64,000 bases of DNA from Adineta vaga (Eukaryota; Animalia; Rotifera), in contig CP075492.1 of NCBI GenBank assembly GCA_021613535.1, forward strand, positions 9,920,001 through 9,984,000, given 5' to 3'. The notes beneath the pieces were generated by a model. That model saw only the letters and a program-made list of their open reading frames with translations. It did no database searches and was not told the origin of the DNA. Each line of letters opens with the position of its first letter. The first letter of the stretch is position 1. Made by a program: the position numbers and the translations under genes. Of this stretch, positions 42,546 through 49,683 are shown piece by piece.

Positions 42546-44266
42546 ATGGCTGAACCAAATTTAATTCTTATAAATGATACTCCGTCCACTTTACAATCAC
42601 TCGAAGAAACAAATTCTCCTGTCAATCAGTCAAACATTTCTATTGTAGAGGAACCAATTCAAATAACTACTAATAACAACGAGACGAGTTCTGACATAAA
42701 ATCGTCAACCACTTCACTGTTAGTAGTATCGGAAAAGTACACGCCGGATTATCATACAATAATGAGTAACGTTCGATTAGAATTATTACGACGAAATGCT
42801 CATACACGTTGTTGTATCGATGAAGGTGACAATGATTCTTTTGATGACGATGATGAAGCAACTACCATGAAAAATTCTTTATGTTCATCAATATCTGCAG
42901 TTACATCGAATTATAATGCAGCATCTTGTCCAATTTGTTTTGAATCTGCTCGATTACAATCATCTTCATGTTGTACATTTCAATGTTGTAATTCTTGTTG
43001 GTATACTCATGTATCAACAACAATAAATGATGGTCGTATAAAAGTATCTTGTATATCAAATGACTGCAGTAAATATTTAACTAAAGAATCAATACTGAAT
43101 TTTATTCGTTATGATTCAATATTACATGACCGTTATTTGAAACTCTATATTAATGCTAATCAAAATCCACGTGCTAAAACATGTAAAAGAAAATTTTCAT
43201 TAATTTGATTTAAATTTCTTCTTTTTTCGTAGGTCCACGTTGTTCTCATCTTTATTCACTTGATGAAATCAATGGACAAAACCCTAATAAAAAATTATCA
43301 AAAAAAGATGAAAATAAAAAGATTCCTAAACAAGTCCAATGTTCCGAATGTTCTTTAGTTTGGTGTTTTCGTTGTGCAGCACCATGGCATGCAAATCTGA
43401 CATGTAAACAATTTGCTAAAGGTGATAAACTATTATTAAAATGGATTAATCAAAAAAATGAAGATCAATGGAATGCAAGAAAATGTCCAAAATGTGCGTC
43501 ATTTATACAACGTGCTGGAGGTAAGTTGAAAGAACTAAAGAAGAAGAAAAGAATAATCATCTGTTTACTATTCATTTAGGATGTCCTCATATGACATGTT
43601 CATCATGTCAATGCGAATTTTGTTATTTATGTGGCCGACGATATTGTAAAATTCCCGTTGTTGGGCATCATAATAATAAATTTAGGTAATTATTCGCGGC
43701 TAGTCTTCTAGTCTATGAAAATTGTTAAACTTCTAAATGCATTTAGTATGTTTGGATGTCCATATATTCTTCATCCTGAAAAACCATGGCTTCGTCGAAC
43801 TATACGTGGTACAATTGCAACGAGTTTAATTGTCGCATCACCAGTCATTGTTGCCGGTGCTTTAACTGCTGCTGTTACTGTTCTACCAACATTTGGCGTT
43901 TACAAATTAGTTAAACATATACGAGCGCGTCGTCGAGCAGTAATATTGTCCAGAGATCATGTGATACCAGATTTGCTGGAAGAGAGAGAATTTGCGTTAT
44001 ATCATGAACAACTTGACACTGATTCCGACGATCTAGTACACAATGCTGATGAGTTTCAAATATTCCGTCAACAATTACTTGAACTTGAAACTCCACCAGA
44101 AACTTTAACTGTTGCATTTCCGTTATCTATTTTTGCTGATATGGATGTGGAAAATTTATTTACAGAACAAACACAATCAATATCAGATAATCTAGCAGAT
44201 TCCACAACATCTGCAGACGATATACAACAAACTTTCCCAACATTAAGCATGAGAACGGATAATTGA
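42546..44266 (+). CDS. RNF217: RBR E3 ubiquitin ligase, RNF217-like (RING1-IBR-RING2-TM)
   Basis: CPICFE..., KTCPRC, WCFRCAAPWH..GDKLLLKW, NARKCPKC..IQRAGGCPHMTC, SMFGCPY..PEKPWLRR, then a TM segment. Confidence 0.88.
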
Positions 44267-44476
44267 ACTCCAAAACATTATTATTCGGTTAATTAAGAAC
44301 ATTCATTCGCTACATTTTTTTTTGTAAAACAAAACGATGTTACTCGAGTGTGTATTTTTTTACATTGATTATGCAAAATGATAAATAAGGTTTTCTACTT
44401 TTTGAATTTAATTACTTTTTCTAAATAAAGATAAATCACAATCACGAAATTATTCGATTAATTATTATTATTTTAT

Positions 44477-46505
44477 TTAGAACATCTTGATTAACAAAGA
44501 ATAAAAGCATTCTCCTTCGTCAAAGTTTTTTTCAATGAACGAATATGACGACCAATTACTTTTAGATGTTGACTTTTTATCTAAAAATGAATACGATATT
44601 ATCGTAAAATCTTTTAGAAGTCTTTTTCTTACGTTTACGATTTTCTGTGGAAATTTGACTAATGTATTGTTTACTAGAATCGGGTTCAATAGTGCCATTA
44701 TCGGGATTTTTCGTCTTTAAAGTAAATGCAAGACGCATATCAGCAAGATGATATGCCTTTTTAAATTCATCAGTCGTTTCAAATATGTCTGTAATTGGCT
44801 TTTTATCTATAGTAACAGAGTAATATACAATATAACATCAGTGAAGATATCATGTCTACATACTGCTTGCATTTTGTGGAGCAGAAAAGACCTTGAGTGG
44901 CTGGTCGCATTCCATTAATTCTTCATTTTTACATACAACGAGCATTAGGCGCAGTCTAAAATACACTGATATGACATTTATCTCATTAAATAGTGAACTA
45001 ATTACTTCAATTGATGAAATATTTCCGAGTACGATGATAAATTCGCTGCATTGTCAAGAGGAATGTAAATTGGATTGCCTCGTTGTGAGTAAGGATCAGA
45101 ATAATTTTTTGGAAGATTGAAATACGAATTAATATATGAAAATCCATTCACTTTTCTGGTGATAACAGAAATTTCTAACAAAGTTGAACACAAATCAGTT
45201 AGTAGATAACTTTTTGGTATCTGAAAGGAAATAAAATCGAATTTTTATATCAAATTTAATTACAGATAAACAAACCAATAGATTAAGAAAATGGTTGTTA
45301 TTTCGATCCGAAATACAACGTGGTGGTTTTTGCTTTGATGGATTGCTTTTTGAGGGCGTAAAATCACCTTTTGTACGACCGCGAAATTTACGCGGAGGTT
45401 CGACTTGAAGTTTCATTTTTGCTGTTTGATCCGAAGTTAAAGCTGCATCATCTGTTGATTCTAAAATCTCATTCGTGTATTTATTGATAGAATGGTTCGT
45501 TTTATACATACGTGATTCACTTGTCGAACAATCACTTTGTTCCATTAGGTCTGATTGATCTTGATTATGTTCTATGATATTCATTTTCATATATGAAATG
45601 TATAAACAGTTTAACTTACTCAATGGTGCTGTTTCTGTCTTACTATGTTTACGAACTTTTTCAGCTAGTAGTAAGTCTGCATACTCTATTAAATAGTGAG
45701 AATATTAGAAAGCAAATGAAAAAAATGAATATTCAATGGTTATTACCGGGTTCTTTTCGTTTGATTACTCTAATTTCCGAAGCCGATGTAGTAATCATTC
45801 CAGATAAATGTTCATCTTCATTGATTTCTGTGAAAAAAGAAACTAAAGTAAACGAAATCTAACAATATGTATTTACCTTTTGATGATGTTGGTGATTCAT
45901 CTGGTTGAAGAGCAGCATTATGATTTGGTTGTTCTAAATTATAATTTGAGAATAAGGTGCATGTTTTTTATACTACATTTCATCTTACCTTTTAGTTCTT
46001 TGACATATTTTTCGAAAAACTGTAACATCTTTGGATCATTTCGATCAAAGATTGTCTTTTTTTCGGTTGGGTTTTCCTCATCGACGAAATATAGAGGATA
46101 GTATTGGGTTTTTATTTCATCATAAAGCATGTAGACACAATCTTTAGTTGATTCGTACCCATCATTATAAGTTTTTTGTAAAGCATCGACATTCCCTTGA
46201 TCATCTTCTTTTATTGATACTAGTCGAATTATAATACCAGCTAATATCGACAGAGCTTGAAGTGCTAATTCCCCACTAGGTAACTTGCCCTTTTTGATAC
46301 GATTACAGTATTTTTGTATGCTTTCGCCACTACTTTTATGTTTTTCGACAATTGGATGTAATCTCTTACAAAGAAGAATACGATCAGCCAGCAACTCTAA
46401 CAAACGTTCTTTAGTTATTGTATTCAAACTAACATTGACATATTGAAACGCTGAATATAAACTGAAACGATTGTCTTCGACGAATCCACGATGAAATGTA
46501 GCCAT
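44477..46505 (-). CDS. Pseudo-OTU domain fused to a Rel-homology-like DNA-binding domain (about 9-10 exons; 3' end uncertain)
   Basis: Exon 1 (46505-45989) is paralogous to the neighbouring OTU but has DNRFSLY and QYYPL at the catalytic motifs. Later phase-compatible exons give KLQVEPPRKFRGRTKGD...LLEISVITRKVNG...LRLMLVVCK...YHLADMRLAFTL...YISQISTENRK, followed by a basic stretch. Confidence 0.65.
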
Positions 46506-47204
46506 CACAAAAAATGTTCAGCCCTTATATTGGAATTAAGAACGTTTACTGTAGCAAAACAAACTAATATTGCAGGTAGCGTTGTTTTGTGTAGTGAAAA
46601 AAGAACAAATCATATTCTTTATATATGCGTGCACGTCTTGCGAGAGAAAAAAAACCAGCATAAGAGAAAAATTTTGATCGTTCTTTCTTTTCGCTGAATC
46701 ATGGGGACGTCAAAAACCAACAAAAGTCGTAAGAAACGGCTGCCGATCGGAAATACATTGGTATGTGTAGGCTAAAAGATTTATTCTGTTTAAAAGTATA
46801 ACCAGTCTCTATTGATTCGAAGTTTTTCTTTCCTATCTATACCTGTTTGGTGAATGTTCCAGAAGGAATATAATTGCGTCGATAAGAGATGGATTTTTCC
46901 GACTCAGAAATAAAGATTTAGGTAGATGACCTTCAACTATGTAGGAATATAAAAGTAACTCAGTAACCACGACGATTTGAGAGTCACAAATATTCAAACA
47001 ATACGTTTTTTAGATTTAGTTAGTATTCTAAATAGAAGGGATTTTTTTATTTTTTTTGTTAGAACAAAAAAAAAGAAAAAGAAAACAAAGGGATAAGAAA
47101 CACATAAGATCATCGTATTAATGACTTGATTGTCATTTTCGGCTATCATATCACTTATTATGTCACTCGGAAAAAAATGAGTTTTATTGAGAGAAAAAGA
47201 ATGT

Positions 47205-48592
47205 TCATTTGGTTTTTGTTAATTCGTCGCAAGATTCAGACGTATCATGTACTTTTGTATTTGTATCGTATTGGCCTGAAGATTGTATGTCCATTTCAGA
47301 TGTGTCTTTCTGATCTTGCTGATTAGAAACTATTGAGAGGTTTGTCAGATCTTTTTGGTTTTCATTTGATTTATGGACTAGAGGTTCACTTTGTATTTCA
47401 TCTTGAATTGTCGTTGAATCATCGTTACATTCATCTAAAAAACGGTATTTATACAAAGTTTTTTTTTCCGTCATCAACTTACAACAAGCTGTTGAATTAT
47501 CAATACCAACTTTTGTACGCTTGTTCGAATCTAGAAATACATTCGTATGAGATAATACTATGTCCATTTCTAAGAGAGTACCGTAATATGTGTCAGATAT
47601 TTTTATTGGAATCATAAAATCATTCCTTGGAAGTGGTAAAATATTATCAAATTCTAAAAACATATACAAATGTAAGAAAAAACAATCAAACTTTCTCGGT
47701 TTCCATTACCGAGTTGTTTTCGTTTCATTGCAGAATCAATGGGCTTTCCGCGTATTGCAAACTATGATGAAAAAATTTGTTGAATATTTAATAAAATTAT
47801 GTTTTTACTATTGATTGCACATATTAATTCTTCAACATCACCCTTTGGACTTGTATCTAAGTTTATTATGCCTTCGTCTAAAATAGAAACAATTGAATTT
47901 TATTATCCATTTTACATATGAAGAAACTTACAATTGAATTTTTCTTTGAGAAATTCTTTGAGAAGTTCGACCATTGTAGTATCATTTCGTTCAAAAATTG
48001 TTTTTTTTTCATCTGAATTCTCTGTATTCACCATATATAAAGGGCTATAATGTATTTTGTTTTCTTCATACAAAATAAAAACACATTGTTCTGCTGCTCT
48101 ATTATCTTCACCATAAGATGAGGTAATGATTGTTCGCTTGCCATTTGTTTCTCTAATGAAGATGATACAAATTAATGTATCAAGTAAATCTGATAAAACT
48201 CTAAGTTCAACAGCACCAGCCAATAGCTTGCGCTTTGTAATTAATTCACAATAATGTTCAGCAGAATGAATTCGGTCAGCACTATTTTTAGCCAGTCCAG
48301 ATAATTCTTCATTTTCACGAATATAATTTGTCACTTGTTTGAGCATCTTTTCGATTATTTCCTTCATTTCTTTTTTCTTGAAAAACTGTCCATCAGTTAT
48401 AGCATCTGTTAAATATTGGTTCAATAAAGCACAATCAAACAGCGCTGAGAAAGCATCGGTGCTTAAATCTTCGTTGAGCATTCTCAGAATATATTGTTTG
48501 AATAGAAGAAGTATACACCAAAATAAACATGCACCATCACTAGCAACGATTCCACATCGGAACTTACGGTTATTGGTAGAGTCCTTATCCAT
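47205..48592 (-). CDS. OTU-family deubiquitinase-like protein with intact catalytic motifs and a low-complexity tail
   Basis: VASDGACLFW (D-G-x-C), AGAVELRVLSDLL and LYEENKIHYSPL (His box) in exon 48592-47932. The downstream small exons are less certain, with a phase problem near 47760. Confidence 0.72.
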
Positions 48593-49683
48593 ACTCGTTT
48601 GTTGTTAGCAGATGTACGAATTATATTATATCAATTGAACAAGGTACATGCTCTTTTATAAGCAGTGGTTAGAGACGTAGAAAAAAACAAGAGAACGAGA
48701 GAAAAAATAGAAGCCGCATGAGAGAAAGAAGAAGGAAAAAGGAAAAAGGATAAAAAAGTCGAAAAAGAAAGAAAAAACGTTATACTCTACGACTAACATG
48801 TATTTTATTGCCTTTTCAAGAAACGTACTACCAACATGTGAGTGCACCATGTGAATGTTGCTGATCTGGTTGACCCTACAAACGATGACTAAGCGATTGT
48901 GTATTTCAAAAGAAAGTATGCCATTTACGTGGCGTACATGTACCCGGAGATGGAAAAAAATTTCATCATAATATTTATACGCAATTCTTGTCTATTCTTG
49001 AAATAAAATTAGAAATTTCATTCCGAAGAAGAATTATAAGCACTATAGCTATATATGTATATTTGAGATCTGATTTGGATCGAATATTCTGGAACATTTA
49101 AAAAAGAATGATGATGCAGTTAAGGTGACCTGGGTTTTTCCAACTGTAGGTATTATATATAAATAGATGAGTCAGCACATAATCCATGAACGTAGTAGTA
49201 GTAGTAGTAGTAGTCATGGGAATAAATAAGATATTTTGACAATGATTTTTATTTGATTCTACGATATAGGAAGCAATACTGATTTATTGTTTATTATCCA
49301 CAATACAAAAAGACAAAACACATCATCACTGTTTACTAAAACATGTAAGAAGGCTAACGTAAAACAAAAAGAAAATGAGTAGGCACAAGAAGAAAAAGAA
49401 GAAGAAGAAGAAGAATGTACTGGTTCCTGATCATCACGAACTACAATGAGACAATATGACAATATAAATAAATAGGAATGTATAGCTTAGATAATTTCAT
49501 ATAGTAGCAAAAATATTTGAAAAAAACGGAATAGAAAAAAAAACAAGAACCGGTGTTTGTCATTTCTACACATACAAAAGACACAAGAAAAATTCCATTT
49601 TCATCATCATCATCATCATTAAGAAAGAAAAGTTAAAGCTCGAAAAAAAACACAACACGGAAGAAAAAGAAACGAAGATATTC

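Follow-up and report, generated by a model that had tools for sequence, protein, structure and literature searches.

A candidate pseudo-OTU domain joined to a cryptic, predicted Rel homology fold in Adineta vaga, a bdelloid rotifer

The DNA analyzed here (the window, a stretch of 64,000 nucleotides, G000:C3:9920001-9984000) belongs to the Adineta vaga assembly (100.8 Mb, six contigs, ~30% G+C). On its minus strand lies a gene whose deposited product is the hypothetical protein I4U23_013917 (P0001, 497 residues), and whose two recognizable parts are an OTU-type domain without catalytic residues and a domain with the predicted fold of the N-terminal half of the Rel homology domain (RHD-N). We describe below the gene and its transcript, the two domains, their relatives in bdelloid rotifers, and the function that this combination suggests.

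The minus-strand gene and its transcript

From 46505 to 44477 the minus strand reads as a start codon, a first exon of 172 codons, and then short exons with GT-AG borders (Table 1); the coding sequence begins with the ATG at 46505 and closes with the TAA at 44479-44477. All peptide strings, together with the start and stop coordinates, that an earlier reading of this DNA (the original prediction) had claimed for this strand were found in the translation, and the first 489 residues of P0001 are identical to the product of the exon chain.

To follow the transcript, we placed contigs of runs X1, X3, X5, and X6, from three studies, on positions 44300-48700. The runs are labelled merely as probable RNA; the contigs are RNA-derived because introns are missing from them and the borders are canonical: every stretch that a contig skips reads CT..AC on the plus strand and so GT..AG on the coding one. 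Joints observed in this way are 45989/45933, 45877/45827, 45747/45685, and 45620/45571, followed by 45512/45460, 45276/45220, 45006/44955, and 44864/44806. A single contig, record 7 of X3 (1476 nt), starts within the OTU exon at 46462 and reaches 44510, within the last exon, indicating that the OTU and RHD-like halves are carried by one mRNA and not by separate ones. Exon 1 is joined to downstream exons in contigs of X1 and X5 as well, and the GT-AG exon chain drawn originally from the letters is borne out by RNA contigs from all three studies.

The last junction is the sole part of the exon chain whose position is unsettled. GT-AG prediction places it at 44633/44580. The contigs that cross it (X3, X6), which differ by 3-4% and represent a diverged allele or strain, have 12 other letters between 44627 and 44563, with the frame of the predicted last exon preserved; in these contigs that frame extends to 44510 and 44504, and it stops at the TAA. 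In the deposited model P0001, the last splice leads to a different short tail. The encoded protein is about 500-516 residues long and consists of three parts, OTU domain, linker, and RHD-N-like domain; its reading frame is intact across 10 exons, and all splice sites are used.

The linker (residues 173-272) is acidic, as had been predicted for the segment between the two domains, with a net charge of -11; it is rich in Ser and Thr, and is probably disordered. It contains a K-R-K...Y..L motif that is conserved in the consensus of the family alignment and looks like a nuclear localization signal.

Table 1. Positions within the window of the exons and key codons of I4U23_013917, and of its tandem paralog
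Feature	Position	Strand	Evidence or remark
Exon 1: start codon and whole OTU-like domain, residues 1-172	45989..46505	-	BLASTP, family profile
Ser15 codon, OTU catalytic Cys column	46461..46463	-	Family alignment; column fixed by profile against 4boq
Gln134 codon, OTU catalytic His column; Tyr136 in place of Asp two codons on	46104..46106	-	Alignment
Exon 2 (linker)	45877..45933	-	RNA joints
Exon 3 (linker; K-R-K...Y..L motif, resembling a nuclear localization signal)	45747..45827	-	RNA joints; motif in alignment consensus
Exon 4 (linker)	45620..45685	-	RNA joints
Exon 5 (acidic linker)	45512..45571	-	RNA joints
Exon 6: end of linker, start of RHD-N-like domain (first strand, recognition loop, strand B)	45276..45460	-	RNA joints, AF2 model
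Recognition-loop codons R287-G-R289-T-K-G-D293	45363..45383	-	Counterpart in RHD: R-x-R-Y-x-C-E
Exon 7: RHD-N-like core strands (LLEISVITRKVNGFSYINSYF...NPIYIPL)	45006..45220	-	RNA joints, AF2 model, fold search
Exon 8: RHD-N-like (LRLMLVVCK...QPLKVF)	44864..44955	-	RNA joints, AF2 model
Exon 9: last RHD-N-like strands and basic E-N-R-K-R/H-K-K stretch	44633..44806	-	RNA joints, AF2 model, fold search
Exon 9, 3' boundary	44633 or 44627	-	GT-AG prediction (44633) or variant-allele contigs (44627)
Last exon and TAA 44479-44477	44477..44580	-	X3/X6 contigs; 5' boundary unsettled
Tandem upstream paralog I4U23_013918 (P0014, 376 residues)	47197..48592	-	Separate transcript

The two domains and their known counterparts

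Taken alone, exon 1 is not recognizable as an OTU domain. Pfam gave no OTU match for it, and each exon scanned separately matched neither OTU nor RHD; in a full-length scan P0001 itself stayed below every Pfam OTU threshold, and a phmmer search of the PDB with exon 1 returned only chance matches to designed repeat proteins. The assignment comes through relatives of the protein. Exon 1 is 33% identical to exon 1 of the tandem paralog (BLASTP, E 6e-25), and an exhaustive HMMER search with exon 1 through 1.84 billion representative proteins retrieved 57 relatives. The orthologue-like proteins of Rotaria exceed the Pfam OTU (PF02338) cut-off, and P0001 is 33-38% identical to proteins above it. A profile built from 20 OTU domains of the family matched the PDB entry 4boq (OTU1/YOD1) with an E of 2e-17 over 157 positions. 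At the level of sequence comparison, paralogs, orthologs, and family profile thus confirm residues 1-172 as an OTU domain of the YOD1/OTU1 type.

The same alignments (the family alignment and the profile against 4boq) fix the catalytic columns: Cys is replaced by Ser15 (the S of DNRFSL), His by Gln134 (the Q of QYYPL, in the context T-Q-Y-Y-P-L), and Asp by Tyr136. The protein has neither the catalytic Cys of the OTU motif D-G-x-C-L-F nor the His of H-Y-D-x-L with an acidic or Asn third residue. The original claim that the OTU Cys and His are replaced therefore stands, but the exact substitutions had to be corrected to Ser15 and Gln134, with Tyr136 added. A Cys-to-Phe replacement, which an ungapped reading against YOD1 gives, was ruled out by the family alignment.

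Adineta steineri and four Rotaria species have proteins with this layout in which Ser likewise occupies the Cys column, indicating that the Cys-less state is old and has been retained. The His is gone as well in I4U23_013917 and a few others; several Rotaria orthologs keep His and Asp beside the Ser. In a maximum-likelihood (ML) tree, the OTU domains of the family fall into three groups. Two are made up of the dead OTUs and of the live OTUs of the chromosome-6 type described below, each with support of 100/99; the third comprises I4U23_013917, its tandem neighbor, the same-layout proteins of Rotaria and A. steineri, and short stand-alone OTUs. With these residues the OTU domain of I4U23_013917 could not work as a thiol deubiquitinase, and the best reading of it is a pseudo-enzyme module. 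A predicted complex of this domain with A. vaga ubiquitin scored 0.00, a value that carries no verdict in either direction.

The C-terminal 215 residues are an orphan by sequence, since no sequence method ties them to RHD. Pfam gave nothing at E≤10, PF00554 (RHD-N) included, for 10 isolated RHD-like domains of the family, and no PF00554 match in the paralog exons; in all, 20 family members or fragments scanned in addition to the gene's own exons, these among them, lacked a PF00554 match. Six-frame searches of the genome with PF00554 and PF16179 (RHD_dimer) were empty; control genomes were equally silent, so these searches do not inform on absence.

We therefore compared the domain with known structures by way of predicted models. 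A first AlphaFold2 (AF2) model, computed from 17 family sequences without paralog fragments, had a predicted local distance difference test (pLDDT) score of 52 and served as a lead only; its four best chains among 48,161 PDB representatives were all RHD (Z 5.2-5.7). For the second model, of residues 270-490, paralog exon fragments were added to the alignment (A4) as separate rows, never joined, and the mean pLDDT was 90.6 (82-91 across five models) with a predicted TM-score of 0.88. Foldseek against the PDB placed only NF-kB p50, p52, p65, c-Rel, RelB, Gambif1, NFAT1, or TonEBP at ranks 1-44, the best of them with an E of 4.4e-6 and a probability of 1.00. VIA-align against the 48,161 chains ranked p65 first (6ggr_A, Z 12.5, root-mean-square deviation 3.3, 158/168 residues aligned), followed by 2o61_A (12.4), TonEBP 1imh_D (12.0), 8u9l_A (12.0), p52 7cli_A (11.9), and p50 8tqd_A (11.2). 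These six chains are all RHD, with 157-176 residues aligned at 10-17% identity, and there is a clear gap to the next families: velvet (7.2 and 6.5), Cep-1/p53 (6.3), CSL (6.3), Ebf1 (5.9), and T-box (5.7). The ESM Atlas gave a similar picture. In its feature search the top-ranked cluster is one of PF00554 (0.88, with 175 features in common), the second is a rotifer cluster in which 44% of members carry PF00554, and the ten best family-bearing matches all belong to the PF00554 family or clan; its shape search returned rotifer clusters, in one of which 14% of members carry PF00554. The predicted structure thus supports an RHD N-terminal s-type immunoglobulin (Ig) fold for residues ~274-480, specifically matching what the original prediction had proposed for this half. 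Neither of the two outcomes that had been named as refuting that prediction, a C-terminal half without a match to this fold and the placing of the two sets of exons in different mRNAs, was observed.

The motifs within the domain, whose parallel to RHD had been noted originally, do follow one another as expected: L-x-I-x-x-x-P, then, after four residues, R-x-R-[YT]-x-x-[DE], with D/E-N-R at the end. The N-terminal stretch, M-K-L-Q-V-E-P-P-R-K-F-R-G-R-T-K-G-D, has the same spacing as its counterpart in NFAT, L-R-I-E-V-Q-P-K-S-H-H-R-A-H-Y-E-T-E-G. The recognition loop, R287-G-R289-T-K-G-D293, is divergent as predicted: it keeps both arginines and the acidic residue (as Asp), and has lost the Tyr and the Cys. 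Across 10 family members, taken from 8 bdelloid species, neither these arginines nor 12 further positions vary. The Tyr of R-x-R-Y is Thr in I4U23_013917, yet it is Tyr in several relatives or orthologs and in the OTU-less paralogs. At the other end of the domain, the structural alignment to 6ggr_A ends with Asn480 (model residue 211) opposite p65 residue 186, which places E-N-R481 on D-N-R187; Arg187 is the linker arginine through which p65 contacts DNA. The domain carries a net charge of +12. About 17-36 residues beyond it the protein ends, too soon for an IPT dimerization domain, whose apparent absence had been remarked on before; none of the family proteins scanned by Pfam matched RHD_dimer. 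We hold with high confidence that a dead OTU domain and an RHD-N-like domain lie together in this one protein.

It is instructive to compare the protein with the known systems closest to it. Like the RHD-N proteins (NF-kB p65, p50, p52, and c-Rel, NFAT1, TonEBP/NFAT5), it has the predicted fold over nearly the whole domain, the motif order, both loop arginines, the NFAT spacing from QP/EP to the first Arg, and a basic residue at the position of p65 Arg187 with a basic stretch after it. Unlike them, it has no Pfam or PDB sequence match, its loop is not R-x-R-Y-x-C-E, it lacks RHD-C/IPT, ankyrin repeats, and a glycine-rich region, and its domain stands C-terminal to an OTU. With YOD1 and yeast Otu1 (PF02338; 4boq, 3by4) it shares the motifs Y-C-x-x-I, G-G-x-x-E-l-x-a-L, h-Y-d-P-L, and T-I-F-x-R-x-D, but it has lost the triad and has neither the UBX-like domain nor the C2H2 zinc finger. 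The fungal velvet proteins (VosA/VelB, VeA), the next-best structural match, are comparable in having an RHD-like DNA-binding fold outside the Rel family that is unrecognizable by sequence; they differ in their lower score (Z 6.5-7.2 versus 11-12.5 for RHD), in loop chemistry, in forming dimers, and in being restricted to fungi. I4U23_013917 is neither a canonical OTU enzyme nor a Rel protein, yet it is built from both folds. What is new is the OTU plus RHD-N-like architecture, and with it a cryptic RHD that lacks the dimerization half.

Relatives, paralogs, and neighboring genes

The named relatives come from A. vaga, A. steineri, A. ricciae, Rotaria socialis, R. sordida, R. magnacalcarata, and Rotaria spp. 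Silwood1 and Silwood2, and the named proteins with the OTU plus RHD-N-like layout are from bdelloid rotifers only. In the databases these relatives are unnamed, hypothetical, or automatically named "Ubiquitin thioesterase OTU", and none is annotated with an RHD. A word-based homolog search came up empty for exon 1; started from P0001 or from the family alignment, it retrieved P0001 itself, two Rotaria proteins, and nothing else. Literature searches returned nothing for rotifer with Rel homology domain, and the ten best-ranked of 157 papers for OTU with Rel homology contained no such fusion; the architecture, unrecognized at the outset, was found neither in those papers nor among named proteins outside the bdelloids. 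The only named non-rotifer match, obtained with the OTU query alone, was P0026, a protein of 2981 residues from the stick insect Dryococelus australis, automatically named centromere protein F, with 14 matched stretches; it may reflect a repeat or contamination.

A profile search of the genome found the RHD-N-like module of ~230 residues at five more loci, its exons matched one by one in collinear order; they are a paralog on chromosome 6 and four loci on C5, C2, and C6. The chromosome-6 locus (G000 C6:5990189-5991906) has a dead OTU open reading frame (ORF) directly upstream of a live OTU, followed by RHD-like exons. The dead OTU reads N-D-N-L-S-L-Y and R-Q-Y-Q-P-L (L003 272-820), and the live one G-D-G-H-C-L-F and K-H-Y-E-S-L (L003 1429-1989). 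In models from A. ricciae, A. steineri, and R. socialis, the dead OTU, live OTU, and RHD-like parts are joined in proteins of 870-955 residues. Proteins of this type (e.g., P0056, P0015, P0038) resemble I4U23_013917 in their bdelloid range, in the order of OTU, KRK-bearing linker, and RHD-N-like domain, and in the latter domain itself, which is 29-33% identical. They differ in retaining Cys and His in the OTU that adjoins the RHD-like domain and in having an additional, dead OTU upstream, whereas the only OTU of I4U23_013917 is dead; the OTU domains of the two types also form separate clades.

The tandem paralog I4U23_013918 (P0014) has its exon 1 at 47932-48592, 1.4 kb upstream of I4U23_013917. 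Its OTU domain is recognized by Pfam (E 5e-7; 30.7 bits, the cut-off being 23.3) and matches 4boq (E 1.5e-4), and it keeps both the Cys (S-D-G-A-C-L-F) and the His (I-H-Y-S-P-L). The RNA joints of this gene are 47932/47877, 47710/47653, 47582/47530, and 47483/47434, and one allele has a 1-base shift at the 47433/47434 acceptor. No contig covers 46652-47092, indicating that P0014 is transcribed separately from I4U23_013917. An RHD-like remnant in the tail of P0014 was considered but got no support from the family hidden Markov model (E 0.68).

The remaining four loci with the module appear to lack an OTU: C5:13120606-13121400 (L012), C5:13123289-13123950 (L015), C2:4304790-4305580 (L014), and C6:945240-945970 (L016). 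Their 3-kb ORF listings contain no OTU-like reading frame, and no OTU search was run there. Their loop reads Y-R-[AP]-R-Y-K-S-D-Y, which is closer to the canonical R-x-R-Y-x-C-E. After the module, L012, L014, and L015 have a C-P-[NH]-C-x-H motif, which takes the form S-C-P-N-C-x-H in the latter two, and a basic stretch; in L016 this was not observed. A further minus-strand ORF, in C3:9992500-9997500, ~28 kb away, reads F-R-F-E-I-D-I-A-D-H-Q-R-R-Q-Y-E-S-D and matches profile positions 1-30 with an E of 0.023; it may be another, very diverged RHD-N-like gene.

Next to I4U23_013917 on its other side lies a convergent gene (42546-44266, plus strand) with a RING-like Cys pattern in its first exon, a hydrophobic stretch in its last exon, and, in exon 43591-43686, a weak IBR_1 match (E 0.004, below cut-off). 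By these sequence features it resembles a membrane-anchored E3 ubiquitin ligase of the RBR type. This putative ubiquitin ligase gene ends ~200 bases from the stop codon of the pseudo-OTU gene.

What the protein may do

How might such a protein work? We lean slightly toward reading I4U23_013917 as a DNA-binding factor with a non-catalytic OTU module; the label proposed originally, a ubiquitin-sensing or decoy transcription factor, is a hypothesis. The protein would enter the nucleus, and its RHD-N-like domain would bind DNA, either in NFAT fashion, as a monomer, or together with a partner; the dead OTU would serve as a binding or regulatory module that binds rather than cleaves. Because in paralogs the OTU attached to this DNA-binding domain is live, the family probably originated as a DNA-targeted deubiquitinase. 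I4U23_013917 may then be its non-catalytic derivative, acting as a competitor at the same sites or as a ubiquitin reader rather than an eraser.

Several observations weigh against reading the protein as a DNA-binding factor. DNA binding by NF-kB needs the dimerization domain, which is missing here. The Tyr of R-x-R-Y, described as conserved in all known NF-kB orthologs (PMC13042239), is Thr in this protein, and Cys38/Glu39 are Gly/Asp. The fold rests on a predicted structure, not an experimental one. The 18 full-length proteins scanned, P0001 included, gave no PF00554 match (9 at E≤0.1, 10 at E≤1), and two family profiles (A1, A4) had zero matches to PDB sequences at E≤10. Finally, the OTU domain sits on a long terminal branch (1.26) in the ML tree, and the allele or strain variants number 9 non-synonymous versus 5 synonymous, which together suggest weak constraint.

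The altered loop and the missing dimerization domain could mean that the RHD-N-like domain no longer reads DNA and has become an Ig-like protein-binding module in cytoplasmic ubiquitin signaling, for example in an adaptor or inhibitor of the live OTU paralogs, one of which adjoins. We consider this unlikely: the family as a whole retains the loop arginines and, opposite p65 Arg187, the basic residue, the domain is strongly basic, the KRK motif in the linker is conserved, and the closest folds are all DNA-binding domains. The signs of weak constraint would likewise suit a decaying duplicate, expressed and heading for loss without a function of its own, as would the lost triad and the failure of exon 1 to reach any Pfam OTU score. 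Such decay is less probable still, given a 10-exon frame that is intact with all its splice sites in use, transcription in three studies, Ser-for-Cys proteins of the same layout in A. steineri and four Rotaria species, and a conserved RHD-like core.

That the resemblance to RHD is convergence or generic Ig-like similarity instead of homology would fit the lack of any sequence match to PF00554 or RHD chains and the low structural identity, but we regard it as very improbable in view of the four-Z gap between the six RHD representatives and every other family, the 158 of 168 p65 residues covered, the exclusive RHD ranks in Foldseek, a language-model search that independently reaches PF00554, the matching order and spacing of the motifs, and the loop Y-R-A-R-Y-K-S-D-Y of the OTU-less-looking paralogs. 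It is scarcely credible that Ser15 serves as a nucleophile in a domain that is still a hydrolase: it stands exactly in the Cys column and several Rotaria orthologs retain His and Asp, but here these are Gln and Tyr, hence there is no general base, and Cys-to-Ser OTU mutants are used as inactive traps.

To our knowledge, in all animals studied, OTU enzymes (A20, OTULIN, Cezanne) control NF-kB as separate proteins. In bdelloids, a single polypeptide combines the OTU and RHD-like families, with live as well as dead versions of the enzyme. A. vaga and other bdelloids have been reported to lack canonical Toll-like receptors, and rotifer immune pathways are undescribed (PMC8609888, PMC6043800). We put forward, as a rather doubtful speculation, that bdelloids possess a compressed ubiquitin-to-transcription pathway in which an NF-kB/NFAT DNA-reading domain is joined to a live or dead OTU, with I4U23_013917 as the reader or antagonist. 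If this is true, the task of erasing or sensing ubiquitin marks would fall to the transcription factor itself, at the sites that it targets.

As far as the predicted fold goes, the family suggests that an RHD can diverge beyond the reach of Pfam and persist without its dimerization half, with consequences for surveys that score the presence or absence of NF-kB by hidden Markov model matches. If the domain does not bind DNA, the family would be an example of the RHD fold in another use; if it does, the family would be a natural DNA-targeted deubiquitinase together with its pseudo-enzyme counterpart.

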